From positions 62,001-126,000 of IMG/VR virus record IMGVR_UViG_3300022698_000267: a stretch of DNA of 64,000 bases; one strand, written 5' to 3'. The notes beneath the pieces are model-generated. The model ran no database searches and had not been told where the DNA came from. It saw only the letters and a list, made by a program, of their open reading frames with translations. Position numbers and translations under genes: made by a program. Positions within the stretch are counted from its first letter, which is position 1, and each line of letters starts with the position of its first letter. Shown here piece after piece: positions 47,514 to 64,000 of the stretch.

Positions 47514-47537
47514 ATATTCCCCCTTAACTTGGTTCAT

Positions 47538-47825: not shown

Positions 47826-48179
47826 ATGAAATGTCTACAGTGTGGTCGATGTTGTTTCTATGCTGTAATCATTATTAAGCCAGAATCTATATCAGAAGAT
47901 CTTGATATGGACTGTTTAACTGATGATGACTTAATGGCTTTGGATGGTACAGAGAAATGTCCTCATTTAACTTGGGAAGGACGTAAAGCTTTTTGTAACA
48001 TTCATCATTACGATTGGTTTCCAGATACACCTTGTGGACAGTTTACACAGATCGAAGCATCACCTCATAGTTTTTGTCGTATTGGGAAGAATATGTTAGA
48101 TCCAAAGAATGAAGATTTATGGCGAAGGATTACTTTTAGAACCTGGGAAGATGAAATAGAGGAGACAAATGAAAAATAA
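47826..48179 (+). CDS. YkgJ-like CxxCxxCC cysteine-cluster protein
   Basis: CLQCGRCC, CPHL, CNIH, PC. Confidence 0.7.
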   Translation: MKCLQCGRCCFYAVIIIKPESISEDLDMDCLTDDDLMALDGTEKCPHLTWEGRKAFCNIHHYDWFPDTPCGQFTQIEASPHSFCRIGKNMLDPKNEDLWRRITFRTWEDEIEETNEK

Positions 48180-49080
48180 ATATCAGTCTTTAACTAAAGA
48201 AGAAAGATTTAAGGGATCTTTGGTTGGTTTGGCAACAGGAGACGCATTGGGTGCTTCTCTAGAGTTTATACATACGATACCAAATCCTCCTTTAACTGAA
48301 ATGACAGATGGTTATTGGACTGATGATACATCTATGGCTCTTTGCACTGTTCATAGTCTTATCGACAGAAGGACTTTTGATTTAAGAAATCAAATGGAAA
48401 ATTTTGTCAGTTGGTACACCAGAGGCTTTCTTAGCAGCAGAGGTTACTGTTTTGATATTGGCAACAGAACAAGAGAAGCTTTAGAAGATTACATGTTGCT
48501 TGATCAAATAACTGAAGGAGTAGATCCCCATGATGACAATTTGAGCAATGGTTCATTGATGCGATTGGCTCCAGTACCTTTATTTTATTACAATAATGTA
48601 GAATTAGCAGCAAAGAGAAGTAAACAGCATACATTACTAACTCATCCTAGTCAAATGTGTGTTGATGCGTCTGCATGTCTTTCAACTTTCATAACTTGTT
48701 GTTTTCATGATCATCTAGGGAAACATGCTTTGGTAGAAGATGTTGCTAACTATCGTAACGACCTTTTTCCAAGTTTAAGTAACTGGTTTGATGATTACTT
48801 ACTTAATCCAAGGAAACCAGATACCAGCAAACATGTTGGTTACGTAATGACATCTTTAGAGATGGCCTTGTGGGCTTTTTTAACTACACCTAACTTTGAG
48901 GAAGGATGTATATTATGTGTTAACAATGGTGGTGATACTGATACCTATGCAGCTATATATGGACAGTTAGCTGGTGCCTACTATGGTTACAAAAGTATAC
49001 CAGAGAGGTGGACAAAGAAACTTATTCAACACAAGATTATTTGTGATTATGCTAAGATTCTTTGTGATATAACTGCTTAA
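48169..49080 (+). CDS. ADP-ribosylglycohydrolase (DraG/ARH family)
   Basis: GDALGA, WTDDT, FDIG, NGSLMRLAP, TH, GGDTDT.AAI.GQLAGA.YG. Confidence 0.95.
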   Translation: MKNKYQSLTKEERFKGSLVGLATGDALGASLEFIHTIPNPPLTEMTDGYWTDDTSMALCTVHSLIDRRTFDLRNQMENFVSWYTRGFLSSRGYCFDIGNRTREALEDYMLLDQITEGVDPHDDNLSNGSLMRLAPVPLFYYNNVELAAKRSKQHTLLTHPSQMCVDASACLSTFITCCFHDHLGKHALVEDVANYRNDLFPSLSNWFDDYLLNPRKPDTSKHVGYVMTSLEMALWAFLTTPNFEEGCILCVNNGGDTDTYAAIYGQLAGAYYGYKSIPERWTKKLIQHKIICDYAKILCDITA

Positions 49081-49622
49081 AATATTTGAAATATAACTTC
49101 TGATATGAATTCAATTCTAACTACGTTCTTTGGTAAGTTATCATGTGTATTCCATTCAGGATGATTAATTAGAAAAACTTTTTCCATCCCTTCACTACAT
49201 TGCAAAGCAACATCGATTCTATCATCCGTCCAGAATTTGATGTTGTTTTTCATTAGATACTCAAACTTCTCATGATTGTCTTTCAGAACTAATGCAACAT
49301 CATCACCAAATTGCTTATTACACCATTTCTGTGTAACTTCTTGTAACCCTGGGTACCTAGCAGTAACTATTGGAACAGGTTGACTTGTTAACTTTCGAAT
49401 GGTTTTGATGGCTGTTTTAACTTCTATTTCAGGTTCCAAGTGATTTTTGGTAAGATGTGTTAAAGCATCCCTGATTTCTTGTTTAATCTCCTCCTCAGAA
49501 ACTCCTGGAATAACTATTCTTTCGATAGGACTTTTTATTTCATAGCCCAATCGATTCTTTAACTCAATTTTCATGTAGTCATATGTGTTGACTATTGTAT
49601 CGTCCAAATCAAAAGCAATCAT
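49077..49622 (-). CDS. HAD 5'(3')-deoxyribonucleotidase-like phosphatase
   Basis: IAFDLDDT, IVTAR, K, DDR, WN. Confidence 0.85.
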   Translation of the reverse strand: MIAFDLDDTIVNTYDYMKIELKNRLGYEIKSPIERIVIPGVSEEEIKQEIRDALTHLTKNHLEPEIEVKTAIKTIRKLTSQPVPIVTARYPGLQEVTQKWCNKQFGDDVALVLKDNHEKFEYLMKNNIKFWTDDRIDVALQCSEGMEKVFLINHPEWNTHDNLPKNVVRIEFISEVIFQIF

Positions 49623-49674
49623 AAAACCTCCATTTTTATTAATATTTTAGTATATAAAAATATTCAAATAGTAC

Positions 49675-49703
49675 TTGACTTTTCACCTAATATACTATAT
49701 AAT
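49675..49703 (+). promoter_or_regulatory. Early sigma70-type promoter
   Basis: TTCAAATAGTAC-TTGACT-17-TATAAT. Confidence 0.88.
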
Positions 49704-49731
49704 GGTTTAAATTTAAAAGGGAGGTAGCAAA

Positions 49732-49860
49732 ATGGTCGACAAAGGTAAGGTCTGGTTGAGGTGTATGGAGTGTGGTAATAAGTTTTCACGATCACTTTCC
49801 AAAAGTCTTTACAATGTCAAATGTCCCAAATGTAAATCCTATGATGTGGAGGTGGACTGA
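49732..49860 (+). CDS. 42-aa zinc-ribbon protein (not in ORF track)
   Basis: CMECG...CPKCKS; SD GGGAGGT; first gene behind promoter 49675. Confidence 0.75.
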   Translation: MVDKGKVWLRCMECGNKFSRSLSKSLYNVKCPKCKSYDVEVD

Positions 49861-50076
49861 TGAGAGACCCAAATAGAACAGCATTTTTTATTTTGGACGA
49901 AAGAGAAGAACGTCGAGTTGCCAATCGGGGCATTGCCGCTAGAAACCGGGATTATCGAGAAACCCTCCGGCTTACCGGAGACCGGCGTGCTGCCACCAGA
50001 GCGTACTGTGCCGGTAACAAATGGCTCATGGAGAATGCACGAGCCTGTGGAAATCTTCCCTAACATCCCCTCCCCC

Positions 50077-50104
50077 TACGGGCTCCCGGAAACGGGGGTC
50101 CGTA
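50077..50104 (+). terminator. GC hairpin with GAAA tetraloop
   Basis: TACGGGCTCCCG-GAAA-CGGGGGTCCGTA. Confidence 0.65.
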
Positions 50105-50232
50105 CCCCTCTAAAGTACCTCTATTTTTCCTCATATGAACCTCATTCTATATGCTCTAAGACACAACGACGCATATTTTATCGTCTGTCTTTTCTTTCGC
50201 AAAATAAAGCAGAAATTTTCTTCAAATAATAC

Positions 50233-50261
50233 TTGACTTTTAGTTCAACACCTTATATAAT
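50233..50261 (+). promoter_or_regulatory. Early sigma70-type promoter
   Basis: TTGACT-17-TATAAT. Confidence 0.88.
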
Positions 50262-50288
50262 ATAGGAAATTTAAAAGGGAGGTAGTAA

Positions 50289-50498
50289 ATGGGAGATACA
50301 TCGTATCAGGAAAAAGATTTTGGTGATGAGGAAATATGGGCCAAATGTGAAACCTTGGAACAGTTTGAAGATTGGTGCATCGATGGTTTCTGGGAGGATC
50401 CAGAGGATTTTGAAAGTGATACTGGAATCACATTCGAGGATATCGAAGGCAGATGGTTCCAGTTTGTTCATGATCGGGTCTATATTAAGACAGATTAA
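50289..50498 (+). CDS. Highly acidic early protein
   Basis: 22 D/E vs 5 K/R in 69 aa; SD GGGAGGT. Confidence 0.75.
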   Translation: MGDTSYQEKDFGDEEIWAKCETLEQFEDWCIDGFWEDPEDFESDTGITFEDIEGRWFQFVHDRVYIKTD

Positions 50499-50985
50499 GG
50501 AGGATTAAATGCGACATCTCACAGCAAAAAACAAAGATAATTTTTTCTCTCGTTTGAAAGTTGGTGACAAGTTTACATCTTCTCCAGATGACTTTATTGG
50601 TAAAGATGTTCATCGACTTGCTAAACAGCAGGGCGTTCTGGTTCGGTATTTTCGGCCGGGAACACTAGAATACAAAGAATTTGGCTGCTTCACTTATCAA
50701 GTTACAAGTTACTTGTGTTCCTTGCAGAAACTTAAAGGGTTAACGGTGGATTGTGTACGTGGCATTCGTACTGATCAGAGAATTAAGAGTGGATTTTCAC
50801 CACAATACATTCTATTTACGGATGAGAAAACGTACATGGCATTGGAGGAACAAGATTATTATACTTATCATGATTGTAATTTCAATGCACGTTGCCTTCG
50901 AATAGAAGAAGATGAACGTATGTGGAAAATAATTAAGGAAGATTTGAAACGTTACCCGGAAGCAGACATCGATTAGAGGTTAACT

Positions 50986-51486
50986 ATGGATTATACCATT
51001 GGTCCTGTGAAAAAATGCGTGGGTTGTGGGTTCTGTTGCATGCAAGCACCATGTGCTGCTTCTGTCAGGCTTTACCCTGGAGCTAAGATTTGTCCTCAAC
51101 TTATCTGGGATGAAGCATTGGAGAGGTATTTATGTGGTCTTATGCAACTTCCTGGTTCGGTTGGCCTGGCTTACAAACAGGAGTTGTATGCGGGAGCTGG
51201 TTGCTGTAGCAACTTGAATTCTTGGAGAAGGAACGTAAAGAATAGACATCCAGTTGACAAGAAGGATAAGCTGTTAACTATAGATCCAATGTTTCAACTG
51301 TTTCTTAACTGCCTTGGACGTGAGTGGATAAGCAGTGATGTATTGGTATTAACAGTTTCGGCTTTCATGTTGAAATTAGTTAATCATATGGATATGACTG
51401 AAGATGAAGCACAGAGGTACGGTGAGCTGGTTACCCATTATATGAAAGATAATACACCAAGTTACCTGAAAGAATTTATGGGATAA
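50986..51486 (+). CDS. CxxCxxCC cysteine-cluster protein
   Basis: CVGCGFCC..APC, CPQL, CGL, GCC. Confidence 0.65.
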   Translation: MDYTIGPVKKCVGCGFCCMQAPCAASVRLYPGAKICPQLIWDEALERYLCGLMQLPGSVGLAYKQELYAGAGCCSNLNSWRRNVKNRHPVDKKDKLLTIDPMFQLFLNCLGREWISSDVLVLTVSAFMLKLVNHMDMTEDEAQRYGELVTHYMKDNTPSYLKEFMG

Positions 51487-51500
51487 TATTCAAAAAGTAC

Positions 51501-51529
51501 TTGACATTTTCAAATTTATACTATATAAT
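51501..51529 (+). promoter_or_regulatory. Early sigma70-type promoter
   Basis: TTGACA-17-TATAAT. Confidence 0.9.
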
Positions 51530-51584
51530 ATGAACAAGTGGTTGGGGATAGGGTAAATGTAAATTTTAGAAAAGGAGAAAGGCT

Positions 51585-51869
51585 ATGCTGTTAGATGAAT
51601 TGACTGCGTATTTCGATCTTAAAGCTCAGGCCGAAGAGATTAAGAAACAGATGACTGAGATTCGGGCGTCTATTCAATCTCAATTACCGGGAAATTCCAC
51701 CAAAACGTTGGTTCATACAGAGGATGGTTTAGTGACACTGCAGACGAGATCCCGTCTTAACAGAAAATGTAAGTGGGATGCTTTTGCAGTAGCAAACCCG
51801 GAACTTTACAACCAGGTGGTCACTGAATCTGAAACCACGTATTTCACCATTTCCAAAAAGCAACATTAA
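51585..51869 (+). CDS. Early hypothetical protein (coiled-coil N-terminus)
   Basis: SD AAGGAG; own promoter. Confidence 0.7.
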   Translation: MLLDELTAYFDLKAQAEEIKKQMTEIRASIQSQLPGNSTKTLVHTEDGLVTLQTRSRLNRKCKWDAFAVANPELYNQVVTESETTYFTISKKQH

Positions 51870-51881
51870 AAGGAAGGAGAT

Positions 51882-51899
51882 TAGGGGCTTCGGCCCCTA
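51882..51899 (+). terminator. GGGGC-TTCG-GCCCC hairpin (family also at 52890, 54104, 54865, 55303, 59266)
   Basis: cUUCGg or cUUCAg loop hairpins right after stop codons. Confidence 0.75.
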
Positions 51900-51927
51900 T
51901 TTCTATGTAAAAATATTCAAATAGTAC

Positions 51928-51956
51928 TTGACATTTTTATCAAATTCTGTTATACT
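51928..51956 (+). promoter_or_regulatory. Early sigma70-type promoter
   Basis: TTGACA-17-TATACT with extended -10 TG. Confidence 0.9.
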
Positions 51957-51999
51957 ATAGTTAATGGTTAAGGAGAAAGTTTTAAGAAGGAGATAACAG

Positions 52000-52347
52000 A
52001 TGGAACCAAATATGATTAATGTTGATGAAATTACTCCAACGGCAAAAGATGTCGAAAGAGCAGAAGGTCTTCGATGGCAGCGGAATACTTTCCATGGAGA
52101 TAATTCTCCGTTCAGGGGTCAGGCTGCTAAGATGGCGAAGTTAATCAGGGACCCAAAGAAGCTTGTGCGTAGAGCTAAGGCAGTCTATAACTTATATGGG
52201 TGCAATGATTATTTTGGCGACTTACCCCCTGGACAATGGATAGATCCGGAGTGGAAAGCAACGAAGGATGCTTGGAGACCATTTGCTAATGCTTTGAAGA
52301 AAATGGGATTCTCCTGGACGCAGATCAGGTCCATTTGCAATCGATAA
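52000..52347 (+). CDS. Early hypothetical protein
   Basis: SD AAGGAG; own promoter. Confidence 0.7.
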   Translation: MEPNMINVDEITPTAKDVERAEGLRWQRNTFHGDNSPFRGQAAKMAKLIRDPKKLVRRAKAVYNLYGCNDYFGDLPPGQWIDPEWKATKDAWRPFANALKKMGFSWTQIRSICNR

Positions 52348-52372
52348 TTTTTAAAAAATCTTCATAAAGTAC

Positions 52373-52401
52373 TTGACATTTTATTAAAATTTTGTTATAC
52401 T
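52373..52401 (+). promoter_or_regulatory. Early sigma70-type promoter
   Basis: TTGACA-17-TATACT with TG. Confidence 0.9.
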
Positions 52402-52455
52402 ACTTTTAAGTGGTTAGGGAAATTAAACGTTAATTTTAAAGAGGGAGGTAACAAA

Positions 52456-52884
52456 ATGGTTTTAAATGAAATGTCTGTTCAGGCCCTGAAGAAGTTCCAG
52501 GAGAAGAAAACCAGCAACAAAGATGTGGACAAGCGGTTTGAAGCAATGGGTGAGCTGGTCCAAGAATTGTCGGAGGTTTATGAGATTGCTTGTCCTCGGC
52601 TTCGTATGAAAGATATCGACGGTTCCTATTCCGGTGGGTCTACGTTCGATCCTGATGAGAATATCATCACCATGCGTGGAAAACTCTCCATTATAACCCT
52701 TCTTCATGAATTTGCTCATGCTTTGCTGCATTCTTCTGCACCGGATTTGCATGATACCAACCGCCGGGATTCAGAAGGGTTCTGCCGAATTTGGAGCGTT
52801 CTCCTTTTCAAAACCGTCTACCCCGAACAATTTGCCAAGCTTTACTATAATGGTGGAAGTTACATTCGCCAGAGAGCAGCTTAA
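52456..52884 (+). CDS. Zincin-like HExxH metallopeptidase domain protein
   Basis: TLLHEFAHAL and downstream E. Confidence 0.65.
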   Translation: MVLNEMSVQALKKFQEKKTSNKDVDKRFEAMGELVQELSEVYEIACPRLRMKDIDGSYSGGSTFDPDENIITMRGKLSIITLLHEFAHALLHSSAPDLHDTNRRDSEGFCRIWSVLLFKTVYPEQFAKLYYNGGSYIRQRAA

Positions 52885-52919
52885 CTTTATGGGGGCTTCG
52901 GCCCCCAATGGAGACAACA

Positions 52920-53573
52920 ATGCTACTGAATATTGATGAAGCAAGAAAAAAAGCGGCAAGTAAACTGTTGTCGTTGTCCTCTTTGAATGAATCCTTTACC
53001 TGTGATGTTTGTGGAGCCCCTTACAAAAGAAAGATTGCAGCCATTAAACATCTTTACAGGGAACATCCAGATGTGATACAACGACTTACTGAAACGGTGA
53101 TGCGAGAACATGCAGAACAACAAAGAGATAATTTTATTCGGGAACTTGCAATGCTTCCCTCTAGGGCCATTGAGAAGTATGAAAAAGACAAAAAAGATTT
53201 TATCGATAAGGTTAAAGATGATTACACCTTTATCTATTACGCTCGCCAGAGACTAGAAAAACTTATAAAGTTGGAAGCAACAGTTGCATTACACAAAGAA
53301 ACCTCCGAATTTATTCGAAATGCTCATTGTTCCTGGAGAGAATTGTTGGCAGATCTGGAGGCAGAGAGAGACAAAAAAATATATGAACTCATCATCTTTC
53401 CAGCGGAGCACAATTCCACTTCGGCGATCAGTAATGTTATAGAAATGTGGAGGTACAAAGCACAATGTAACTTCTACAAGAAAGATGTTTCCAGTGCAAT
53501 GGGAGATTACATTCATACTCTGAGAAAGATAATTGAAGCAGATTCCTTCTTAGCTTTCGCCCCTGTCCAATAA
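52920..53573 (+). CDS. C2H2 zinc-finger-containing protein
   Basis: FTCDVCGAPYKRKIAAIKHLYREH. Confidence 0.65.
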   Translation: MLLNIDEARKKAASKLLSLSSLNESFTCDVCGAPYKRKIAAIKHLYREHPDVIQRLTETVMREHAEQQRDNFIRELAMLPSRAIEKYEKDKKDFIDKVKDDYTFIYYARQRLEKLIKLEATVALHKETSEFIRNAHCSWRELLADLEAERDKKIYELIIFPAEHNSTSAISNVIEMWRYKAQCNFYKKDVSSAMGDYIHTLRKIIEADSFLAFAPVQ

Positions 53574-53590
53574 TAATCAGGAGGTAACAA

Positions 53591-56300
53591 ATGGATTTAA
53601 TAATTGAATTAGAAAGAAACGATGACTTTTCGATTAATGATTGGGGATCAGCTCAGTATTGTGGAGCCAAAGCATTTTTCGATTTACTCGATAAATATCG
53701 TAAAGATTCTTCTTTGGATGATTTGTTAGCGGAGTTTGGAATCGTTGTTGGTTATGACCATAAACTTCCGTTCGAACAAGTTAAGATGGAAATTCGTACG
53801 TCGTTTGATTTCGATGATCCCACAATTCAGGATATTCGTAATGCTGAGACCATTGAGGATATTTTCGAAGCTTTAAAGGATGCAAGTTGGGATCTTTGGT
53901 CGGCTGCTTCCTTCGTAGCACAACATTGTTTTCTTAACTTAACTGTAACTGGTGTTCCAACAGCACATAGTGTTGGTCCTGTTGGCAACCAAATGGTGCA
54001 ATCTGAAAATTATCTCACTGGTCTTTACTGTGCTCTTCTAGTCGAGTTTGAGTACGTAACTGATTCCAGTTGTTTCGCTAATTTCGATACCTAGAACTCA
54101 AGGATAGGGGCTTCAGCCCCTATTTCTATGTAAAAATATTCAAATAGTACTTGACAAATCCTCCAAATTCTGTTATACTATGTTTAAGTGGTTGGGAGAA
54201 CCTTTTACAGGAGGGTACTATGGAAGATTGGAAACTGGAGAAAATGATCGAGCTTTCAGACATTCTCGAGACACCTGATGGTTTTCGTCGGGAAGAGGAT
54301 TTTGGATGTGATAATTCTAAGAATCCTTGGATGTCGGAACCACCTTCGATCAAATTTTTTGCAGAAGATGGCAGTGTCGAGGTGTTTTTTCGTTTCGATT
54401 TCAGCGATTACGATAGAAAACAGGAGCTGACGATTTGTGGGACGACGAATTTCGTGATGCCGAATGGCAAGCGATTCACCTTCGATCGGCGCGGAATCAG
54501 CGATTCTTTTTATTTTGGCACACAATCGTACAATGAGCCGCTCAGTTCTGCTAATAAAATTTTGGCAGAGCAGATTGAATTGGCGCGGGATGGCATCATT
54601 CGCAGAGCAGACGCTGAAGACGTTCCTGGTCTTCAAGGTTTCAACATCACTCAGGAGAAGAAGAAGAGGATGACAGAGGAGTTGAAAGCGGGAAGAGTCG
54701 TTCAACTTGCCCCTGGAGGTATGGGAATTGGTTATCATCTTTCGAAACTGAAGAGCAATTTGAATCCTGGTCGATGGGGTGCTAGAAAGGCTGCTGACGC
54801 GATGGCAAAATTTTTCAATTGTACGACTCTCTGGATTGAGGAATTTGATCACGATTAAAATTTAAGGGGCTTCGGCCCCTATTTCTATGTAAAAATATTC
54901 AAAAAGTACTTGACAAAACGAACAAAATCTGTTATACTATATTTAAGTGGTTGGGGAGAACATTTAAATAGGGGGTACTAAAATGGGAGTTAATATCGAA
55001 GTTAAATTTACTGGTGAAAATGGTTTGGATTTGGTGGTACCAGTATCTGGTCCCGGCAATTGGAAGCTTCGTACCCAGACCGATTTTGGTTACGTGCTTC
55101 AAGGATACAATATGCACCGAGAACTTTTTATCCTTCTCAATGTTGACGATTGGAGAGTTAATATTGTTACCACCATTGTTGCCCACGGAGAGGGTATTTT
55201 CAGCAGAGGTGTAGACTTGGATCCCGAAGCAGATGATTTTGATGATAATTACTCCAATGTCGTGAATGAGATGCTCGCTAATTTGCCCTATGTTTAAGAT
55301 TAGGGCTTCAGCCCCATCTAAAGGAGGAGTAAACAGATGAGAGGAACCGTAAACGTTACCACAACTATTGGTTGGAGAGTAGTTGAGCACAAAAGTAAAG
55401 CTGGTGGGTTTGTTGGGTATATCGACGCAACTTACGATCGGTTGATTGAGCTTCTGGGTAAACCAAAGGGTTCCAATCCTTTTGGTAAAGTGAAAGCCGA
55501 GTGGGTTGTTCGTTTTACTACGGGAGACGAGTTTTACATTTACGATTTTAAAAGTAACAAAGAACCAGAGGATAGAACTTACTGGCATGTTGGTGGTAGT
55601 CGAAAGGCTGCTGAATGGTTTTTCAATAGTCTGGGAATTACAATGTATCGGGATCGATAAAATATTCAAATAGTACTTGACAAAACGAACAAAATCTGTT
55701 ATACTACATTTAAGAGGTTAGGGGAAAATACATAATAAAGGGAGGTAGCAAATGAGAAGAGAATGGAATGGAACGATGAACGTTGGAAATATGGAGCAGA
55801 AGATAATTTTCCTTACGGAGATGCAGGGTCAGTTGTCGGATGGTATGTGGGAGAATACAGAACCTTTTGACCATTGGCATCCGTGGTGTTCGTTGAATTG
55901 GGATACAGTCCACGTTGAACCCAATAACACAGGTGTAACCGGAAACCTTACTGCTGCTCGCAAACGGGGTTATCGATTTAACAGTACTGAGCTGTTGGAG
56001 ATTGTGGGCGAACGCATCATCGTCAAGATCAACCTGTGGAAGAAGCTTGGCGATAAATTCCTGGAGATTCTGGAAAAGAATCATTGGCTTATTCCGGATG
56101 ACGGCCGGCTTCCAACATCCAAAGATGAATATTGGACCAAGAAACGAGAAAAGTTGATCGAGCTTGGATTGACTGAAGAAGTAATGAGGGACGCCCTGGA
56201 AAATGGATCTTATACCATGAAGGATCTTCGAAATGACTGTGCTGCGTTAACTAAGGTTCTCAAAGCTAATGCAAAGGAACCTGCACAAGAAGCTGCTTAA
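53591..56300 (+). CDS. Early hypothetical genes (53591, 54220, 54983, 55337, 55752)
   Basis: Each with a strong SD; most behind their own promoter; ORF 54151 should start at ATG 54220. Confidence 0.65.
54151..54179 (+). promoter_or_regulatory. Early sigma70-type promoter
   Basis: TTGACA-17-TATACT with TG. Confidence 0.9.
54910..54938 (+). promoter_or_regulatory. Early sigma70-type promoter
   Basis: TTGACA-17-TATACT with TG. Confidence 0.9.
55677..55705 (+). promoter_or_regulatory. Early sigma70-type promoter
   Basis: TTGACA-17-TATACT with TG. Confidence 0.9.
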
Positions 56301-56376
56301 CCTCCCTCAAGGGGTGGCCTCCCCAGCCACCCCTCCTTCCTTCCACTTAAAAAATTCAAAAATATTCAAAAAGTAC

Positions 56377-56405
56377 TTGACAAAACGAACAAAATCTGTT
56401 ATACT
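56377..56405 (+). promoter_or_regulatory. Early sigma70-type promoter
   Basis: TTGACA-17-TATACT with TG. Confidence 0.9.
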
Positions 56406-56458
56406 ATATTTAAGTGGTTGGGGAGAGACCACAAATAAAATAAACGGGGGTAGAAATC

Positions 56459-57502
56459 ATGTGTTGGTTATATTTAAGGACGACGCAAAAAACAAGGCCA
56501 GTATCGAACCATTATTTAAGGAAGTTTTACAGTAAGGGTGGGGACCTTAACCCGGATGGTTGGGGAATCACCTCTTATATGGCAAAAGCCAAAGACTTCA
56601 CTCTGATGAAAGAGCCCACTAATGCTTCCGATAGCATGGTAGCCCATGCAGTTTCGGTTCAAAGTGGACTTCCAAAGACCAGAGCGGTCATTGCTCATGT
56701 TCGGAAAAAATCATGTGGCAAAGTTTCTTATCGGAATACACAGCCCATGTTGAAGAGAAGTGAAGTTACCGGAGAGATGTGGGCTTTTGCACATAATGGT
56801 AGTGCAACTCAGGAACAGATTGATGAGTTGAAAGAAGATGTAAAGGAAAATTGCTCTTACAAACCTGTTACACAGCTGGACAGTGAACTCCTTTTCATTG
56901 AATTTATGGATTGCATAGATAGGATAATGAAACCCAAAGATGAGAGTCGAGAAACCTTCAAGGTGATTCATGAATTTCTCAAAACCCTTAATGAGTATAC
57001 CAAAATGTGTGTGGTTGCTACAAACGGCGAGCTGTGCTTTGCTTACAGGGATATGAAGGGACAAAGATTCCTTCATTTACTCAAAGATAAGGTAGGCTAT
57101 GTAACCAGCACCCAACCACTTACCAGTGGTCCTTGGAAATCATTGTCACCTGGACAGATGTTGGTTTTTAAACGTGGAAAATTGATTTACAATAGCCATT
57201 ACAAACAAGATGCAGGAAAGAAGGTTGTTGCACAATCATCAAGGTCTGGTGGATATCAGTTATCTCCATACAAACAATCTTCTTACAAATATGATTTTGC
57301 CTTTCCCAAAGACGAGTATCTTATGGGTCGTGATAATTTTCATGATGAAGCAGAGGAGATGGGTCTTTGGGATGATTTGGATCAGGCAACCCGTTCCGAT
57401 GGGCGACGAGATTATGATGCCGTTCTGCTGGAAGATGGTCAGGATGGTCATTCGTTTACAACGATCGGTGAACATGTAGCAAATAAGTTTTCTGAATTCT
57501 AA
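56459..57502 (+). CDS. Class II glutamine amidotransferase (YafJ/EgtC-like Ntn hydrolase)
   Basis: N-terminal MC nucleophile, NPDGWG, AHVR, NTQP, FAHNG, DSE. Confidence 0.85.
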   Translation: MCWLYLRTTQKTRPVSNHYLRKFYSKGGDLNPDGWGITSYMAKAKDFTLMKEPTNASDSMVAHAVSVQSGLPKTRAVIAHVRKKSCGKVSYRNTQPMLKRSEVTGEMWAFAHNGSATQEQIDELKEDVKENCSYKPVTQLDSELLFIEFMDCIDRIMKPKDESRETFKVIHEFLKTLNEYTKMCVVATNGELCFAYRDMKGQRFLHLLKDKVGYVTSTQPLTSGPWKSLSPGQMLVFKRGKLIYNSHYKQDAGKKVVAQSSRSGGYQLSPYKQSSYKYDFAFPKDEYLMGRDNFHDEAEEMGLWDDLDQATRSDGRRDYDAVLLEDGQDGHSFTTIGEHVANKFSEF

Positions 57503-57600
57503 TCTAACCTCCCAACAACCCCCGACTGATGTAGCGGCTTCCCCCGGCCGCTACATCTATGTAATAACAGAAGATTTTTATATAATTATTCAAATAGTAC

Positions 57601-57629
57601 TTGACTTTTTAGTTCGTAGCCTATATAAT
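57601..57629 (+). promoter_or_regulatory. Early sigma70-type promoter
   Basis: TTGACT-17-TATAAT. Confidence 0.88.
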
Positions 57630-57675
57630 ACGTTTAAGTGGTTGGGGAAATGGATACGAAAAATTGGAGGTACTT

Positions 57676-57957
57676 ATGGAAGCAAATGAATTCGAAAGAG
57701 AGGAAATTTTAAATCAGGCTTACAACTTCGAGAAATTTGCAGTGAGGGATGGTGTGGTTGTTATTAAACATCCAGATGGTCGGATCCGGCTTACGGAAGA
57801 GGCTGGTCTTGGGCTTATACTTATTACTTCCTTTCCAGATGATGATACAGAGGGAGTTAAGACTTTTTGGATGAACATAAGCTCACTTCATGATTTGGGT
57901 AATAAATTGCGTGTTTCTGATCAAAGGAGAGTTTCACCAGATACAATTTGGATATAA
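57676..57957 (+). CDS. Early hypothetical protein, paralog of 62934..63236
   Basis: REEILN.A.NFEKFAV and FW.N.SS...LG.KLR shared. Confidence 0.7.
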   Translation: MEANEFEREEILNQAYNFEKFAVRDGVVVIKHPDGRIRLTEEAGLGLILITSFPDDDTEGVKTFWMNISSLHDLGNKLRVSDQRRVSPDTIWI

Positions 57958-58247
57958 TTTTTGGAGGATAATGTTATGGAAGCTTTAGAGATAGCTGATA
58001 AATGTGTTCGAATTGCAAAATCTTGTTGTCACAATGAACAAGTTGATGTTGCTAAGAATTTTTTTAATCGGGCTATCACAAAATTAGAGGCTAGTGATGT
58101 TCCGGGAAAGATGGAAGCTATAGACATCATAATCACAGCGTGGAATAAACTTTTGAATGATAGGGAACAGGGTGTCTTAGGTACTGGTTTCGAACATATT
58201 GATTCACAAACTATTTTAAATTAAGAACATTTTTCTTCAAATAGTAC

Positions 58248-58276
58248 TTGACTTTTTAGTTCGTAGCCTATATAAT
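58248..58276 (+). promoter_or_regulatory. Early sigma70-type promoter
   Basis: TTGACT-17-TATAAT, spacer identical to the 57601 copy. Confidence 0.88.
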
Positions 58277-58327
58277 ACAAATAAGAGGTTGAGGAATTAA
58301 GAACTTAAATTAAGAAAGGAGATAAAA

Positions 58328-59251
58328 ATGGAGGCAATGGAAACAAGTTTACAGACGATGAATGATGAATCAGTGAATCCTTTTTACGAAGTGGGTCGAT
58401 TCCCACTGGTGGCAAAAACTCGCACACCAGATGGACACTTTGGTCCCACCGTTGAGGCCGGATATGATCTTTTGGTCAATATGGAGGATCATTCCCCAGT
58501 CGGTCTTATCAGCCCTGGTTACAATCTGGTTACCAACAGGGAATTGGATGTGATGATTCAGGAGGCGACAGATGGAATTTCAATTCATTCCATTCAGGAT
58601 CATATGAATGCGAATGGAAGCGCCTGGATTCGGCGAATGATCTTCGATGCGGATAATATGACTTTTGATGTCACCGGCAACAATGACATTGTCAAGATCA
58701 TGCTGGAAATTTCCAATTCCTACAACGGACAGTCTTCCCTGGAAATGAACATGAAATTGTGGCGGAAGATTTGTGTCAATGGTTTAATGGGTTGGACTGA
58801 TTACCAACAACTTCGGTTCAAACATCTGGTGCAGGGAATTGTCGAAAGATTGAAAGATCTGTTTCGATTGAATGTGGATCGTGCAAGTGCTCAGGTAAAC
58901 GTTTGGAGCGATTGGGCCGAGATTACATTTCCACAGCAGATGTTCAATGATTTTATTGACATGCACAAAGTTCCGCTCACCGATGAAGAAGCAGAGACCA
59001 AATCACCGGTTCCCAGAATGTTGAGTGATCGACAGGCCGGATTCATCAAGGACCGTTACGAGCCGATCATGAACGAATATGGTGAGAACGAAACCAAATG
59101 GGGTGCGTACAACGTTCTTACGGCTATTGCAACCCATGATATCAAGACGCGCAAACCTGGGACCTCCCCTCTTTTTACTGCGGCATATGCAAGGATGGAG
59201 AAGTTGATTGGATCCTTCTACAATAACCAACCGGAAAATTTGCTTAACTAA
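58328..59251 (+). CDS. DUF932-like phage/plasmid protein
   Basis: Y.LVTN.E, NSYNGQSS, R.ICVNGL, TKWGAYN.LT..ATH. Confidence 0.75.
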   Translation: MEAMETSLQTMNDESVNPFYEVGRFPLVAKTRTPDGHFGPTVEAGYDLLVNMEDHSPVGLISPGYNLVTNRELDVMIQEATDGISIHSIQDHMNANGSAWIRRMIFDADNMTFDVTGNNDIVKIMLEISNSYNGQSSLEMNMKLWRKICVNGLMGWTDYQQLRFKHLVQGIVERLKDLFRLNVDRASAQVNVWSDWAEITFPQQMFNDFIDMHKVPLTDEEAETKSPVPRMLSDRQAGFIKDRYEPIMNEYGENETKWGAYNVLTAIATHDIKTRKPGTSPLFTAAYARMEKLIGSFYNNQPENLLN

Positions 59252-59298
59252 TAACCCACATAACTAGGGGGCTTCGGCCCCCTTGAAGGAGAGCAATC

Positions 59299-60018
59299 AT
59301 GTTAAACCATCTTATTTCAACAGAAGATAATTCTATTTCTATTTGGCGCCCAGACAATGGTCCTCATCTCATAAAAATCTTGACTTATGTGACTGAAGAA
59401 GGTCCCAGATATACATTCGAATACTTGGGACATTATTTTCCTGAAGATGGTTCAATTGTATGTCCCCGTACCTGGAATGAAAATTGTCCCATATGTGATT
59501 TCATTGAAATCAGTTGCAAAGGTTCTGGTATGGATTTTCTTGACTTTCGTTTTATACGAGCCAAGAAGCGGAGTCTCTACAATGTTGTTGTTTTGGATAC
59601 CAAGAAAGAAGAAAAACTTGGCGTTCAGATACTTGACATTTCAAGTTGGTTTGCAGAACGAAACCTTCTTGATCTTTTTAAAGAACTTATCCAAAGTGAA
59701 CCTCCTGAATTTGATTCACTCACTCCTGAATTAGAAGAAGTATACAATTACATTTCAGATTATGTTGCTTATACTTTAAAAGCAAAAGAAGTGGCTGACC
59801 CTATTCAAATTCTACAAGAAAATTATGTGCGGTTTTATGTTCGAGGAAAACGAACTTTTACTATGCAGATGGATCATTGGGGATTGGAACCTGATGAACG
59901 GAAATGCAAATGTAATGAACTTGTCCCTCATAACTTGGAGAATCTGTTGGTAAAATCAACGTTCGAAGAAGTTTATGCTAAACTCCGGAATTATTTCAAG
60001 AAAGATTGTAAATGTTAG
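59299..60018 (+). CDS. T4 gp32-like single-stranded DNA-binding core, divergent
   Basis: IWRP, HY...CPRTW.E.CPICD, K.R.LYNVVV, terminal KSTFEEV. Confidence 0.55.
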   Translation: MLNHLISTEDNSISIWRPDNGPHLIKILTYVTEEGPRYTFEYLGHYFPEDGSIVCPRTWNENCPICDFIEISCKGSGMDFLDFRFIRAKKRSLYNVVVLDTKKEEKLGVQILDISSWFAERNLLDLFKELIQSEPPEFDSLTPELEEVYNYISDYVAYTLKAKEVADPIQILQENYVRFYVRGKRTFTMQMDHWGLEPDERKCKCNELVPHNLENLLVKSTFEEVYAKLRNYFKKDCKC

Positions 60019-60037
60019 TAAAAAGTTCAAAAAGTAC

Positions 60038-60066
60038 TTGACAAATCCTTCAAATTCTGTTATACT
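60038..60066 (+). promoter_or_regulatory. Early sigma70-type promoter
   Basis: TTGACA-17-TATACT with TG. Confidence 0.9.
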
Positions 60067-60468
60067 ATGTTTAAGTGGTTGGGGAGAACATTTAAATAGG
60101 GGGAAGCAAAATGGGAGCAACGAATTTTTATTGTGAAGCAGTTGGAAAAACAGTGCAGGAAGCCTTTAATCGGGCCATCGAAGATGCGAGGCATGAGTAC
60201 GGTCATCGAAGCTATACTGGTTCGATTGCTGAAAAAGCAGGGCATGGCTTTCGAAAGGCTAATTTCCCAAAACGGCCGACCAAGAAGAATTTTGGCGATC
60301 AGGTCTATGAACTTTCAGACAAGTCGGACAAATATGGTCCGGCCCTTTATCATGAATTTACCGGCGTTATGCGTACCGAAGCCTGTCGTCGCCACGGCGT
60401 TAAAAAAGGTTCTCGGTCTAAGGTCTTTGCGTTCTTCGGTATAGCGTCTTGTTAAAGGGGGTCTAAAA

Positions 60469-60972
60469 ATGAAAAAGAAAATAACAACCAACATTTTTGT
60501 CTACGGAACATTGCGAAAGGGTTTTGGGAATAATAGGTTGCTGAAAGATTCCAGGTTCGTTGGAGATGCTGTTACGGTAAGAAGATATGGAATGTATGCA
60601 TCTGGAATCCCTTACGTTCATGAAGACGAAGCCTTTTGCACTGTAGTTGGAGAGGTTTACGAAGTTGACATTGATACTCTTCTGAAGCTGGACAGGTTGG
60701 AAGGACACCCGAATTTTTACCGGCGAAAGACTGTCGACGTTTGTTTGGCCACCGGCAATTCTATCCGAGCCGATATTTACTTCCATCAAGGAGGTGTTGG
60801 GGACCATATGCATAAAGTTGTAAATGGTGATTACAAATACCAGGAGAAAGAGGAGATTGAGAAAGTCTCTACACCTACGGTCTGGGAACCAAAAATTTGG
60901 ACATCGAAATCATACGTTTCACCAGTTAAGAAATCTCTTCTTGCAGCCTTCCGGGCTAGAGTATTTAATTAA
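60469..60972 (+). CDS. Gamma-glutamylcyclotransferase family protein
   Basis: FVYGTLRKG, P, V.GEVY.V, LDRLEG...Y.R. Confidence 0.9.
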   Translation: MKKKITTNIFVYGTLRKGFGNNRLLKDSRFVGDAVTVRRYGMYASGIPYVHEDEAFCTVVGEVYEVDIDTLLKLDRLEGHPNFYRRKTVDVCLATGNSIRADIYFHQGGVGDHMHKVVNGDYKYQEKEEIEKVSTPTVWEPKIWTSKSYVSPVKKSLLAAFRARVFN

Positions 60973-60991
60973 TAATTTCTTCAAATAGTAC

Positions 60992-61020
60992 TTGACAAAT
61001 CCTCCAAAATCTGTTATACT
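60992..61020 (+). promoter_or_regulatory. Early sigma70-type promoter
   Basis: TTGACA-17-TATACT with TG. Confidence 0.9.
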
Positions 61021-61061
61021 ATGTTTAAGTGGTTAGGGGAAATAGAATATAGGGGGAACAA

Positions 61062-62642
61062 ATGGGGACAAAGACGAGAAGTTACTTAGGGGTTGAGGGT
61101 CGTCACATGAAACCTACGCCCAGTCATCGTCCGGCGATTTGGGAATGTATGCTGGGCACGGTTTATGCATTGAACGATAAGGGTAAGGTTAGATATTTCG
61201 ATTTTGATTATGATGCAGCCAAAGAGTTTGCTGGAATTGATGAGAAACGGGATTTGAGAATCTGGAAGAATAAACGTTGGGTTCGTTGGGGTAATGGTGG
61301 TTCCTGCGAGCAGCCGAGAATGAACCAATTGGTTCTTTGGATCAAGGAGGCCGCATAATGTTCGATAAAGATGAGATTGAAGAATTGAATCGAAGATTTC
61401 CTCCTGAGATGACTGATGATCAATTCAAGGAATTGAGGCAAGAGATTATTGATGCCATAAACAGATTGAACTATCTGCAACGAATTCATTATCGAGAAGA
61501 AGGAAAATCTTATAAACCTTTCATATAATACTTGACAAAATCTTTAAAATCTGTTATAATGTATTTAGATTTGAGGAGGGAACATGAAAAATTCAGAGAA
61601 ACGAGATTTGGTCAGGCGTTTGATGCGAGTAAGTGTGTTTGAGAAATTTGATGGTCCTTATTCACATCACAATAGGGTTACAGCAAGGTTTCAAGAGAAT
61701 TCAGCCGTTGTGGTAACCAGAACCTTAGAAGCTTTATTTCCCAAGAATAAAGTTACTTGTCAACCCACCAGAGTTTGGGGAAGACTTTCTGTTCTTCGTC
61801 GGGTCACTATTTACATTCCAGTCAAGGAGTAACAAAATGAAACCAGGAATTTTTGGATGGTCTTATCCACCGGGGGTAACTTCGGTTCCCGGTGATTATG
61901 ATGAACCTTGTGAAGTTTGTGGTGGGATGCCTGATGATGATTGTATATGCCCTGAATGCCCTGAATGTGGGGCTTACGGCGATCCCTTTTGTTATGAAAA
62001 CCATGGTATGATAAAGACCCAAATGCAAAAGGATTATCTGGCGGTCAAAGAGAAAGAATGGGAAGAAGCTGCTAGGGCAATGGAAAAGGACATGGAAGAA
62101 GCCTATGGCGAAGCAGATTCTATCTTGGAGGAAGACTAATGCAAAGCCCCTACTATATTCAGAGAATGAAAAGAGTTGAAAACCCATCAGAGAACCCGTC
62201 TGTCGATGACCTTTATCGAATGGACTATATGGGTTCGGCAGAGTTTGAGTTTGGAGCTCTGCCCAAGTCATTGAAACGTATGACCAAAGTTTTCGATGAG
62301 CTTGTGGTTCAGATATCAGTAATCAAGGATTTCAAAAAGAAACCTCTTTACCTGCTTGGAACAGCAAAAAATGTTCATGAATATCAAAATTTTATTCCAG
62401 AATTGTTTTATGAAAAGATTCATTTGAAAGAAAGGCTGGAGCATACGTATGCTTGGAAAGGTAAAGGTGGTTATGGTATTACCAAGTATCCTTTCAAAGA
62501 GTTTTATCATCCAACGGCCTGGTGGGACATTGACAATGATGTGATGTTCACTTTCGGAAAGAAGCACGCTGAAAATTTGCGAAAAGCTATTGGTGTCGTT
62601 CGGGACAAGAAGATGGCACAAGGGAAATCCGAATGGTACTAA
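61062..62642 (+). CDS. Early hypothetical genes (61062, 61358, 61584, 61837, 62139)
   Basis: SD sites and promoter cassettes; 61837 is Cys-rich and acidic; 62139 has DYMGSAEFEFGALP. Confidence 0.65.
61532..61560 (+). promoter_or_regulatory. Early sigma70-type promoter
   Basis: TTGACA-17-TATAAT with TG. Confidence 0.9.
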
Positions 62643-62753
62643 TTGTATTTCTTCAACACCTCCCCCCCAACACCTTTCTCATGAGAGGTGAGGTCCCCTC
62701 CCTCACCTCTCCCTACCTATCACATAAATTATTCTGAAAAGTTCAAATAGTAC

Positions 62754-62782
62754 TTGACATTTCTATCAAATTCTGTTATACT
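62754..62782 (+). promoter_or_regulatory. Early sigma70-type promoter
   Basis: TTGACA-17-TATACT with TG. Confidence 0.9.
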
Positions 62783-62826
62783 ATGTTTAAGTGGTTAGGG
62801 GAAATAGAATAAAGGGGGGATAGCAA

Positions 62827-62934
62827 ATGATGAATGAAGCCGAATATGATTTTTACATGGAAGCACAGAGACAGGCGTGGGAAGTAGAGCAAGAGCTGGA
62901 AAAAGAAGAAGCGGAAGAGGAGGTGATAGAATAA
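62827..62934 (+). CDS. 35-aa very acidic peptide (not in ORF track)
   Basis: MMNEAEYDFYMEAQRQAWEVEQELEKEEAEEEVIE; first ORF behind promoter 62754; TAATG overlap with next gene. Confidence 0.7.
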   Translation: MMNEAEYDFYMEAQRQAWEVEQELEKEEAEEEVIE

Positions 62935-63236
62935 TGGAAATGGCTTTCGAATGGCAGCGGGAAGAGATTTTGAATAAGGCTAACAATTTTGAGAAGTTTG
63001 CAGTAAAGGGAAAGACAGTCACTCTTATCTGTTCGGATTGTACAATTGTCCTTCAAGTTGGAGTTGTACAAAGGGTGGAATTGGTTTTTGTTTACTACTT
63101 CCCAAAGGCTGCAGATGAGAAACCTTTGGAATTTTGGATCAATAAATCGTCTATGTCACAGTTGGGTGATAAGCTTCGAAGTTCTGCTTTTAAACGGGTC
63201 CCATGGACTGAAGTTCCAGTACTGAAGTTCCAGTAA
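62934..63236 (+). CDS. Early hypothetical protein, paralog of 57676..57957
   Basis: Start moved to ATG 62934 (SD GGAGGT). Confidence 0.7.
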   Translation: MEMAFEWQREEILNKANNFEKFAVKGKTVTLICSDCTIVLQVGVVQRVELVFVYYFPKAADEKPLEFWINKSSMSQLGDKLRSSAFKRVPWTEVPVLKFQ

Positions 63237-63300
63237 AAACTATTCCTTTACTTAGATTAAAACCTTTTTAAAATCATTTGAATCTACGTAGAGGACATTG

Positions 63301-64000
63301 ATGGGAAAGAGTAGGTTAAAACCCAAGGTTAAGAAAGAAATTGCAGTTGTTCCACATTCTCGTGTGGATCCTAAGAAGGGAGTTGAAGAAGTTGAAGGAC
63401 ATCAACGTAGTATGGATGTTAATGCTGCTGTTTCTGATGTACATAAATCGAAGGAAAATGCAGCAAATCCTGATAGACAAAGACGAGAGTTTGTGGATGA
63501 TATGAATCAGAAGTTTTCTGAGATGAATAGTAGGGAAGAAACACATGATGACTTTAGAAAAAAGACTGGACAAAGAGAACAAGCAAAGCGTCTTACCAGT
63601 GAAGAAATAGGAACTATTGATAAGTACACAGAGGAAGTTGGATTCAATGAAAAGTTGCGAAAGTCTATCAAGGATGGACATACCAATGATCCAGACGTAA
63701 AGCTTCTGGATTCTGTGGTTTCTAAAGCAGAACCACTAGCAAATGATACGTTAGTAGTTAGAGGATCCAGAAGAGATTTTCATAAAACCATTGGTAGAGA
63801 GTTGAAAGTTGGTGAAGTCATCACAGACCATGGATTTATGTCTACCACTACACAACCGGATGTAGCTTCTAATTTCATGTGGAAGCAGAATAAAGATACC
63901 GGAAAGATCAAGATGGGAACCTTCTATCAAATAAGTTTGCCGAAAGGAACGAAAGCATTTCCTATAAATGCTAAGGAGCATGAATATCTTCTTTCCAGAA
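63301..64000 (+). CDS. ADP-ribosyltransferase, R-S-E (VIP2/C3/Alt-like) class; truncated by window end, not in ORF track
   Basis: Manual translation: KYT...N.KLR, LVVRG, GFMSTT, I.LPKG.KA, KEHEYLLSR. Confidence 0.88.
   Translation, partial: MGKSRLKPKVKKEIAVVPHSRVDPKKGVEEVEGHQRSMDVNAAVSDVHKSKENAANPDRQRREFVDDMNQKFSEMNSREETHDDFRKKTGQREQAKRLTSEEIGTIDKYTEEVGFNEKLRKSIKDGHTNDPDVKLLDSVVSKAEPLANDTLVVRGSRRDFHKTIGRELKVGEVITDHGFMSTTTQPDVASNFMWKQNKDTGKIKMGTFYQISLPKGTKAFPINAKEHEYLLSR

Follow-up and report, generated by a model that had tools for sequence, protein, structure and literature searches.

An early ADP-ribosyltransferase and an unlinked Tri1/DraG-like ADP-ribosylglycohydrolase predicted in an uncultivated jumbo phage

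When one phage encodes both an enzyme predicted to attach ADP-ribose to arginine and an enzyme predicted to remove it, do the two form a circuit, or does each serve the phage on its own? The question is raised by a stretch of 64,000 nucleotides (hereafter the window) that makes up bases 62001–126000 of the IMG/VR record IMGVR_UViG_3300022698_000267. A sequence-only reading of the window had noted an open reading frame (ORF) from 63301 with the R, STT and ExE (EHE) motifs of an ADP-ribosyltransferase (ART), here called ART1, together with an early hydrolase of the DraG/ADP-ribosylglycohydrolase (ARH, also ARG) type at 48169, and had proposed that they write and erase arginine ADP-ribosylation in one phage. 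Both gene identities were borne out. Their arrangement leads us to favour, tentatively and at a little short of an even chance, a reading in which ART1 is an early host modifier resembling ModA and ModB of phage T4 and the hydrolase is a free-standing eraser of arginine-linked ADP-ribose.

The hydrolase ORF translates without a stop into 303 amino acids and covers the whole PF03747 ADP_ribosyl_GH profile (positions 1–287 of 287; E 8.2e-60; 203 bits against a cut-off of 26.2). It also matches phrog_6572 (E 6e-62). Its matches in the PDB were the Thermus ARH 2cwc (E 5e-48), Tri1 of Serratia (6dre_A, 6.5e-44), Lmo0067 (8za7_A, 3e-33) and DraG (2woc, 4e-20), while the serine-specific ARH3 was more distant and aligned over partial stretches (1e-14). 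The NCBIfam ranking agrees, with the Tri1 ADP-ribosylarginine hydrolase NF041672 first and DraG TIGR02662 second. Scores of 198 bits against an equivalog cut-off of 490 for NF041672, and of 127 against 337 for TIGR02662, mark the phage protein as a relative of these enzymes, not an equivalog.

In an alignment of the hydrolase clade, the motifs GDALG..E32, T51-D-D-T, D96-I-G-N, T158-H and G-D256-T-D258-T are invariant. The segments T51-D52-D53-T54, T158-H159 and D256-T-D258-T259 align with the same motifs in 2cwc, Tri1, Lmo0067 and DraG, and the binuclear metal-site motifs and the TH motif are all intact. The stretch F-D96-I-G-N aligns with FDIGN of Tri1 and VDVGN of DraG, and its Asp is also common to Lmo0067. 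The Asp of this (F/V)-D-(I/V)-G-N motif has a catalytic role in DraG-type enzymes. With these features the protein is predicted to be a metal-dependent ADP-ribosyl-arginine hydrolase of the Tri1/DraG-like kind; the TH motif is one named for the ARH superfamily (PMC9503650). The alignment begins at residue 70 of Tri1 and at position 63 of the NF041672 profile. The phage protein thus starts where the catalytic domain of Tri1 starts and is without the N-terminal toxin-occluding extension of that protein. According to Ting et al. 2018, this extension reportedly gives Tri1 a further way to block its toxin.

ART1 begins with an ATG behind the ribosome-binding site AGAGGA and is still open at the end of the window, which holds the first 233 of its 330 codons. 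Extending the contig, as the sequence-only reading had suggested, recovered the rest: in the whole genome record the gene runs 293 nucleotides past the window end, giving a protein of 330 amino acids. The PF03496 ADPrib_exo_Tox profile matches the truncated part with E 4e-8 and the genomic protein with E 4e-11 (39.9 bits against a cut-off of 23.4). The three motifs stand at the expected places as R154, S181-T-T and E226-H-E228. An exhaustive profile search gathered relatives, and in the resulting alignment of 40 family members S181 and E228 never vary and R154 varies only in a second ART of the same genome (ART2), which has K.

An AlphaFold2 model of ART1 (pLDDT 83.9, core above 90) has the ART fold with an N-terminal helical subdomain. 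Foldseek matched it with probability 1.00 to Certhrax, VIP2, CDTa, Plx2A, Vis, C3, iota Ia and 8za7_B. For Certhrax, VIP2, CDTa, Plx2A, C3 and iota the E values were 2e-9 to 1e-7, with TM scores on the target of 0.57–0.67 where that target has a single domain. Certhrax, VIP2, CDTa, iota and Vis are arginine-specific ExE enzymes. By sequence, the best PDB match was a weak one to Lmo0066 (8za7, E 0.06), and phrog_832, annotated 'RNA polymerase ADP-ribosylase', was matched weakly (E 5.8e-4). A tblastn search at E 1e-5 with the 234-amino-acid part of ART1 in the window against 50,697 phage records returned one weak match overall and none in a T4-like phage. The nearest relatives of the domain are parts of giant polyvalent-type phage proteins and of a minor-capsid (MuF-type) fusion, two kinds of ART-bearing protein described as host-directed effectors (PMC9503650). 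Both tails of ART1 are strongly basic, and basic termini are conserved in the family. As judged from motifs and model, ART1 is predicted to be a catalytically intact R-S-ExE mono-ADP-ribosyltransferase with a C3/VIP2/Certhrax-type fold, and the ExE motif suggests arginine as the acceptor. Because family profiles, fold and conserved homologues agree, the assignments of ART1 and of the hydrolase lie far beyond chance.

The promoters bear on when the two proteins would be made. The phage uses the RNA polymerase (RNAP) of its host, with sigma70-type promoters and a sigma-like factor of its own. A consensus scan of the genome found 49 sites within one mismatch of TTGACA-17-TATAAT/TATACT, and about 42 of them, all on the + strand, fall within 51 kb (genome 105.8–156.8 kb), each 25–55 nucleotides 5' of an ORF. 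The part of this array inside the window covers 43866–64000. Many of its promoters are TG-extended, and a conserved TTTAAG(T/A)GGTTGG leader lies downstream. About 42 promoters arrayed in this way characterise an early region that the sigma70 RNAP of the host transcribes. Several array spacers are identical, for example AAACGAACAAAATCTGT, which occurs three times, and this suggests duplication of promoter cassettes.

A sigma70-type promoter and a place in the array uphold the early assignment that the sequence-only reading had given to the hydrolase, as far as promoter sequences can tell. Its proposal of a timed, reversible modification fared worse, as the perfect TTGACA-17-TATACT of ART1 lies in the same early array as the hydrolase promoter. 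ART1 and hydrolase are probably both early and made together. With a shared early period and no genetic coupling, the two would not work as a staggered on/off switch.

Genetic coupling was sought in gene order and in phyletic pattern. The hydrolase and ART1 are 14 kb apart in separate units with separate promoters, and more than 25 ORFs lie between them. Since they neither stand side by side nor share an operon, they are not an adjacent pair of the usual kind. Among relatives, the position and promoter class of the ART vary and the position of the hydrolase is fixed. Single-protein scans of IMG/VR with ART1 and with the hydrolase as queries returned nothing. An alignment-based scan gave 80 loci with hydrolase relatives at 30–43% identity, and no neighbour is conserved among them. 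When 25 other hydrolase-bearing large phage records were searched whole, an ART was found in 7 (in 3 of the 13 records with a completeness of 90% or more), by PF03496 or the family profile in 2 and as ART-PolyVal in 5; this census was a fast first look of low sensitivity at three ART families, and its counts are a lower bound. For jumbo phages in general, Iyer et al. 2022 (PMC9503650) put the share with ARTs above 40% and that with ARGs at about 5%. As 7 of 25 is not above that background, hydrolase-bearing phages show no enrichment for ARTs of the families searched. In Aeromonas phage avDM12-TAAL, the one locus inspected for the published ART–ARG adjacency, the 205-amino-acid upstream neighbour gave no match to the ART profile. 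Hydrolase relatives are annotated in 47 isolate phages, none of them characterised, among them phages of about 350 kb of Erwinia, Serratia (BF), Salmonella (7t3) and E. coli, as well as Bacillus G and Cronobacter S13.

ART1 itself has closer company. Its unit consists of a 100-amino-acid ORF, ART1 and a gene for a 64-amino-acid four-cysteine protein, and the next promoter follows at window-equivalent 64516. The 100-amino-acid ORF is a paralogue of the ORF at 57676–57957 (43% identity, E 1e-16); a tandem 14-nucleotide repeat, CTGAAGTTCCAGTA twice, closes it (63208–63236). In the small protein C26, C29, C39 and C58 are invariant across about six family members, which are nearly always found beside a member of the ART family. 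It has no Pfam, PHROG-level or NCBIfam match, and a fold predicted from six sequences was unusable (pLDDT 41.5). A look-alike search of the Atlas gave unnamed viral clusters alone, all below 0.9. Prediction of a complex with ART1 gave no verdict, one control scoring nearly as high, and is used as evidence in neither direction.

The genome carries a second such pair outside the window, and this pair, like the missing end of ART1 and a DraT-like gene described below, lay beyond what the sequence-only reading could cover. In ART2, K replaces the motif Arg, S-V-A replaces S-T-T and D-F-E replaces E-x-E; the catalytic triad is not present, and the protein scores 24.2–24.7 bits with PF03496 (cut-off 23.4). 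The only close ART relatives in libraries of 5.8 and 1.8 billion proteins were three proteins of 309–322 amino acids, which stand at the position of ART2, beside a CmcI-type methyltransferase, an amidase and GyrA, and keep R, STT and ExE intact. The small-protein gene lies directly 3' of the ART in these relatives, or two genes further on in one of them (L019); one small contig has the four-cysteine protein with no ART immediately 5'. Maximum-likelihood analysis places ART2 with its positional orthologues (97/98 support), although its branch exceeds theirs in length more than tenfold; ART1 and the L019 protein branch off separately. The identity pattern of the four-cysteine proteins parallels the ART tree. 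In another relative (L105), the genes that flank the ART1 cassette here abut with no ART between them, and the hydrolase is kept. The intact ART of the relatives is without a sigma70-type promoter. These patterns would fit an ART and four-cysteine gene that travel as one cassette, with a second cassette gained or retained under an early promoter and the resident copy released from catalytic constraint. ART2 is a candidate pseudo-enzyme that evolves fast. No PADLOC defence model matched the hydrolase, ART1, ART2, the four-cysteine protein or the cysteine-rich operon partner of the hydrolase.

Further genes of NAD+ and ADP-ribose metabolism lie elsewhere in the genome, among them a NADAR gene in the early region, a NAMPT-like phosphoribosyltransferase gene and a gene for an NAD-dependent DNA ligase. 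A 545-amino-acid early protein has a DraT-like C-terminal domain with the motifs FRG, SSWT and QQE, the last being ESE in a relative. Searches of the phage's own genome found neither a macro domain nor a Pfam DRAT match; the DRAT assignment comes through the orthologue in the relative L005, whose gene is the immediate 5' neighbour of the ART and whose protein scores above the PF07357 cut-off (28.4 bits, E 1.2e-6). In the Atlas, the structure closest to the DraT-like protein is that of a DRAT cluster (TM 0.65/0.63). A two-sequence DraT-like profile gave one insignificant match, and no PDB relative was found. DRAT was not detected among the 25 hydrolase-bearing records; the controls were silent too, and the result is uninformative. 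A basic N-terminal leader common to the ART family and the DraT-like protein looked plausible by eye and in a joint profile and was not retained, as the single-family profiles missed each other. In viral contig L051 (4969–6933) a 654-amino-acid protein joins a start that looks Nudix-like by eye to a hydrolase relative.

Under the reading we favour, host sigma70 RNAP would transcribe ART1 from its early promoter as part of the three-gene unit. Soon after infection ART1 would place ADP-ribose from NAD+ onto host proteins, likeliest on arginines, for takeover. The hydrolase would be made in the same early period from its different three-gene operon and would strip arginine-linked ADP-ribose irrespective of the writer. 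The marks erased would be those that host or competitor transferases leave on phage proteins or on host proteins that the phage has hijacked; stray marks of its own transferases may be among them. Host RNAP and the ribosome, the targets named by the sequence-only reading, are purely conjectural ones. Its other suggestion, that an attack by host ARTs is reversed, agrees with the evidence no less well than reversal of the phage's own marks; no adversary system was identified for it. The NADAR of T4, an orphan eraser directed against the DarTG1 defence (PMC11825919), is a precedent for a stand-alone eraser in counter-defence.

Several observations weigh against an uncoupled eraser. In two samples, 3300033146 (L005, L007) and ERZ27249621 (L006, L105), an ART and the hydrolase both seem to be retained, which a functional pair would also explain, though this is one lineage seen on separate contigs. 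The best PDB sequence matches of ART1 and of the hydrolase are the two chains of the ART–ARH complex 8za7, an argument limited by the weakness of the ART1 match. Co-expression is what an immunity-type partner would need. The narrow, low-sensitivity ART census may make the hydrolase look more of an orphan than it is, and the early timing is drawn from promoter consensus only. No protein-arginine ADP-ribosylating anti-phage system was identified as an adversary of the hydrolase, and PADLOC gave nothing.

The samples with both genes and the resemblance to 8za7 also speak for a dedicated writer–eraser circuit, in which the hydrolase would remove the marks of ART1, and perhaps those of the DraT-like gene, so that arginine ADP-ribosylation of host RNAP, the ribosome or other proteins is transient or proof-read, or so that the phage is protected from itself in the manner of Tri1 and Lmo0067. 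An ExE transferase and a Tri1/DraG-like hydrolase are chemically matched, the common early array would have the hydrolase present while ART1 acts, and DraT is the classical partner family of DraG. Nevertheless we regard the circuit, the main rival of the favoured reading, as possible and rather unlikely. Adjacency and a shared operon are missing, one relative retains the hydrolase but has no ART1 cassette at the syntenic site, and the intact ART of relatives lies elsewhere, without a sigma70 promoter, so that temporal pairing differs between close relatives. The hydrolase has no ART-binding extension, its relatives occur mostly in phages without ARTs of the families searched, and to write and erase at the same time without regulation would be futile if the substrates were the same. 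Of the writer-and-eraser proposal, the two genes and their compatible chemistry stand, and a dedicated partnership found no coupling evidence. In another alternative, the hydrolase would act not on protein arginine but on a soluble or nucleic-acid-linked derivative within a phage NAD/ADP-ribose metabolism, such as O-acetyl-ADP-ribose, phosphate-linked ADP-ribose on RNA or DNA ends, or an ADP-ribose-derived immune signal. ARH superfamily members act on O-acetyl-ADP-ribose and on phosphate-linked RNA and DNA ADP-ribose (PMC9503650, PMC11833690); the Nudix–ARH fusion, the NADAR, NAMPT-like and NAD-ligase genes, and scores below both equivalog cut-offs agree with such a role. We judge it improbable, as the closest characterised relatives (Tri1, DraG and Lmo0067) are all protein arginine-ADP-ribose hydrolases and the DIGN Asp is conserved. 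Moreover, phyletic patterns led Iyer et al. to assign phage ARGs a preference for macromolecular conjugates (PMC9503650), and ARH-like enzymes are inactive on base-linked and 2'-OH-linked RNA ADP-ribose (PMC11833690).

Doubt may equally fall on ART1, which might modify another residue or nucleic acid, transfer NAD-capped RNA in the manner of T4 ModB, or be mainly an NADase; the hydrolase could then not be its eraser. ExE R-S-E enzymes include DNA- and RNA-modifying and RNAylating members (PMC8883491, PMC10468400, PMC11833690), strongly basic tails would suit a target associated with nucleic acid, and ART1 has no close characterised homologue (best PDB E 0.06; one weak match in 50,697 phage genomes). 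Its best structural matches, Certhrax, VIP2, CDTa, iota and Vis, are all arginine-specific, and a different acceptor seems unlikely to us. Less credible still is an ART packaged in the virion and injected like T4 Alt, whose marks the early hydrolase would then erase. The polyvalent-type and MuF-type relatives of the domain, the conserved basic termini, and orthologues that lack an early promoter and lie near an amidase/endolysin-like gene would suit an injected effector. A consensus early promoter precedes ART1, though, and small early genes surround it; the genome showed neither a head-protein fusion nor a head-gene context, and ART2, which holds the ancestral position, no longer has R or the first E. 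A bolder scheme joins four parts into a self-contained circuit of arginine ADP-ribosylation: the incoming cassette, set under an early promoter, would have displaced the resident ART, the four-cysteine protein would be a new ART regulator or targeting subunit, and the hydrolase would proof-read by clearing marks from phage and off-target proteins, leaving the modification on chosen host targets alone. The displaced ART2 (K/SVA/DFE), by now a fast-evolving pseudo-enzyme, would be kept with its own four-cysteine partner. We give this scheme little credence, and the uncoupled early modifier and free-standing eraser remain the reading we prefer.

The hydrolase is the third and last gene of its operon, overlapping the 117-amino-acid ORF by 11 nucleotides, and that ORF overlaps the 55-amino-acid ORF by 4. 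A terminator-like hairpin (47487–47515) 3' of the HU gene precedes the operon promoter. Two metagenomic relatives (L007 and L008) keep the operon together with its promoter, and also the genes for dUTPase, sigma70-like factor, metallopeptidase and HU that form a conserved block 5' of it. The equivalent promoter reads TTGACT-17-TATAAT (L008 5547–5575; L007 9138–9166), the hydrolase is 59–60% identical and the 55-amino-acid ORF sits at the same place with 76–86% identity. The 117-amino-acid ORF, whose match to PF03692 CxxCxxCC is weak and sub-threshold (E 0.031), is 71% identical in L008, directly 5' of the hydrolase; another gene takes its place in L007. Back to back with the operon promoter, a perfect TTGACA-17-TATAAT on the − strand (47538–47566) faces the 3' end of the HU gene across the hairpin. 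A divergent minus-strand promoter occurs at the same place in L007 (weaker, two mismatches) and L008, and the one here may drive an antisense or non-coding transcript. On the far side, a 181-amino-acid ORF (49077–49622, − strand) converges on the hydrolase; it has DLDDT near its start and a weak HAD_2 match (E 0.07), and is absent from the relatives. Host ARG systems are often coupled to phosphatases (Iyer et al.; PMC9503650).

Other early genes of the window include those for a glutamine amidotransferase, a DUF932 protein and a GGACT/AIG2-like protein (Table 1). A paralogue of the GGACT gene lies at genome 162001–162387, a few kb 5' of ART2. In L105 a GGACT gene is followed by a gene with a cpYpsA SLOG domain, and GGACT fusions occur in some bacterial ARH proteins (P0103). 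A tRNA scan of the window found none.

The record is a single IMG/VR entry of 273,563 bp (273.6 kb) with a completeness estimate of 97%, from an uncultivated jumbo phage with a G+C content of about 36–41%. Megablast of the region against 50,697 phage genomes gave no match, and no isolate phage is close. The portal protein had a single match, at 24% identity, in the Ralstonia jumbo phage RsoM2USA.

Table 1. Positions of the genes, promoters and motifs discussed, in window numbering unless the genome is named
Feature	Position	Strand	Remarks
Conserved block: dUTPase, 343-aa sigma70 region-2 protein (sigma-like factor), two small ORFs, PhageMetallopep metallopeptidase, HU-type protein	44244–47454		
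HU-type DNA-binding protein gene	47146–47454		
Sigma70-type promoter of hydrolase operon, TTGACT-17-TATATT	47597–47625	+	10/12 consensus matches
55-aa ORF, operon gene 1	47662–47829	+	Family search: none
117-aa cysteine-rich ORF, CxxCGxCC start, operon gene 2	47826–48179	+	
ARH, Tri1/DraG-like, 303 aa	48169–49080	+	PF03747, PDB matches, motifs
Class-II glutamine amidotransferase (GATase_4)	56459–57502		
DUF932 protein	58328–59251		
GGACT/AIG2-like gamma-glutamyl cyclotransferase	60469–60972		
Consensus early promoter of ART1 unit, TTGACA-17-TATACT	62754–62782	+	TG-extended
100-aa ORF, ART1 unit gene 1	62934–63236	+	Function unassigned; no Pfam family
ART1, R-S-ExE ADP-ribosyltransferase	63301–64000 in window; ends at window-equivalent 64293	+	PF03496, motifs, fold
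R154 codon (VVRGS)	63760–63762	+	NAD-binding Arg of R-S-E triad
S181-T182-T183 codons	63841–63849	+	STS-type motif
E226-H227-E228 codons	63976–63984	+	ExE: ARTT loop and catalytic Glu
64-aa four-cysteine gene	Window-equivalent 64295–64489 (L001:2796–2990), outside window	+	2 nt after ART1
NADAR	Genome 143187–143669, outside window		Early region
545-aa early protein, DraT-like C-terminal domain	Genome 151957–153594 (L014), outside window		42 kb from hydrolase
ART2, second ART, 299 aa	Genome 165716–166615 (L003:1237–2136), outside window		33% identity to ART1, E 7e-50
66-aa four-cysteine homologue	Genome 166623–166823 (L003:2144–2344)		8 nt after ART2; 38% identity, E 4e-14
NAD-dependent DNA ligase	Genome 215321–217207, outside window		
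NAMPT-like phosphoribosyltransferase	Genome 226024–226686, outside window		

Among phage hydrolases of the ARH type none has yet been characterised, and T4, the standard model of phage ADP-ribosylation, encodes writers and is not known to have an eraser of this type. The genome described here offers a compact set of parts, with an intact early ART and its conserved small partner, a naturally degenerate paralogue, a DraT-like gene, a Tri1-like hydrolase and a NADAR, from which to ask whether phages only write such marks, edit their own, or undo ADP-ribosylation imposed by hosts or competitors, as AdfN does on DNA. That an ART and an ARG can occur within one phage had already been proposed, and their coexistence catalogued (PMC9503650), and the genes extend known annotation without a new principle. 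More original are two points, the cassette of ART and four-cysteine gene and the paralogue whose motifs have degenerated in nature. The four-cysteine protein inherited along with the ART is a candidate for a new accessory factor of ARTs.

Compared with the ModA, ModB and Alt enzymes of T4, ART1 is likewise a phage R-S-ExE mono-ART, presumably directed at arginines of host proteins. Like ModA and ModB it would be an early gene read by host RNAP; T4 Alt is injected. It differs in having no relation to T4-like phages at the tblastn threshold used, a weak phrog_832 match alone, and in its four-cysteine partner gene and degenerate paralogue. In the catalogue of phage ARG/ARH genes and ART–ARG pairs (Iyer et al. 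2022; PMC9503650) the present case falls among those that carry both, with the two genes unlinked.

The Tre1–Tri1 pair of the Serratia type VI secretion system (6dre) and the Lmo0066–Lmo0067 pair of Listeria (8za7) share the predicted chemistry, in which arginine is ADP-ribosylated and the mark removed. Of these proteins Tri1 is the closest to the hydrolase (6.5e-44; 198 bits) and Lmo0067 is similar too (3e-33), and Lmo0066 is the best PDB sequence match of ART1. Both known pairs are encoded by adjacent genes, unlike the phage genes, which lie far apart in separate units. Tri1 blocks its toxin with the N-terminal extension that the phage hydrolase lacks, and the phage protein scores far below the NCBIfam equivalog cut-offs. 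DraG is similar in fold and motifs (2woc, E 4e-20; TIGR02662, 127 bits), and the phage has a DraT-like protein as well. Unlike DraT–DraG, there is no nitrogenase context, the DraT-like gene is distant from the hydrolase gene, and the score is below the DraG cut-off (337 bits).

AdfN, the orphan NADAR of T4 that counters DarTG1, differs from the phage hydrolase in fold, NADAR as opposed to ARH, and in substrate, guanine in DNA as opposed to what is presumed to be protein arginine. Its role has been demonstrated in T4, whereas counter-defence has been shown for no phage ARH. It is expressed during infection and undoes ADP-ribosylation imposed by the host (PMC11825919), and a NADAR is present in the phage described here too. 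Like AdfN, the phage hydrolase is a stand-alone remover of ADP-ribose with no cognate writer adjoining it.

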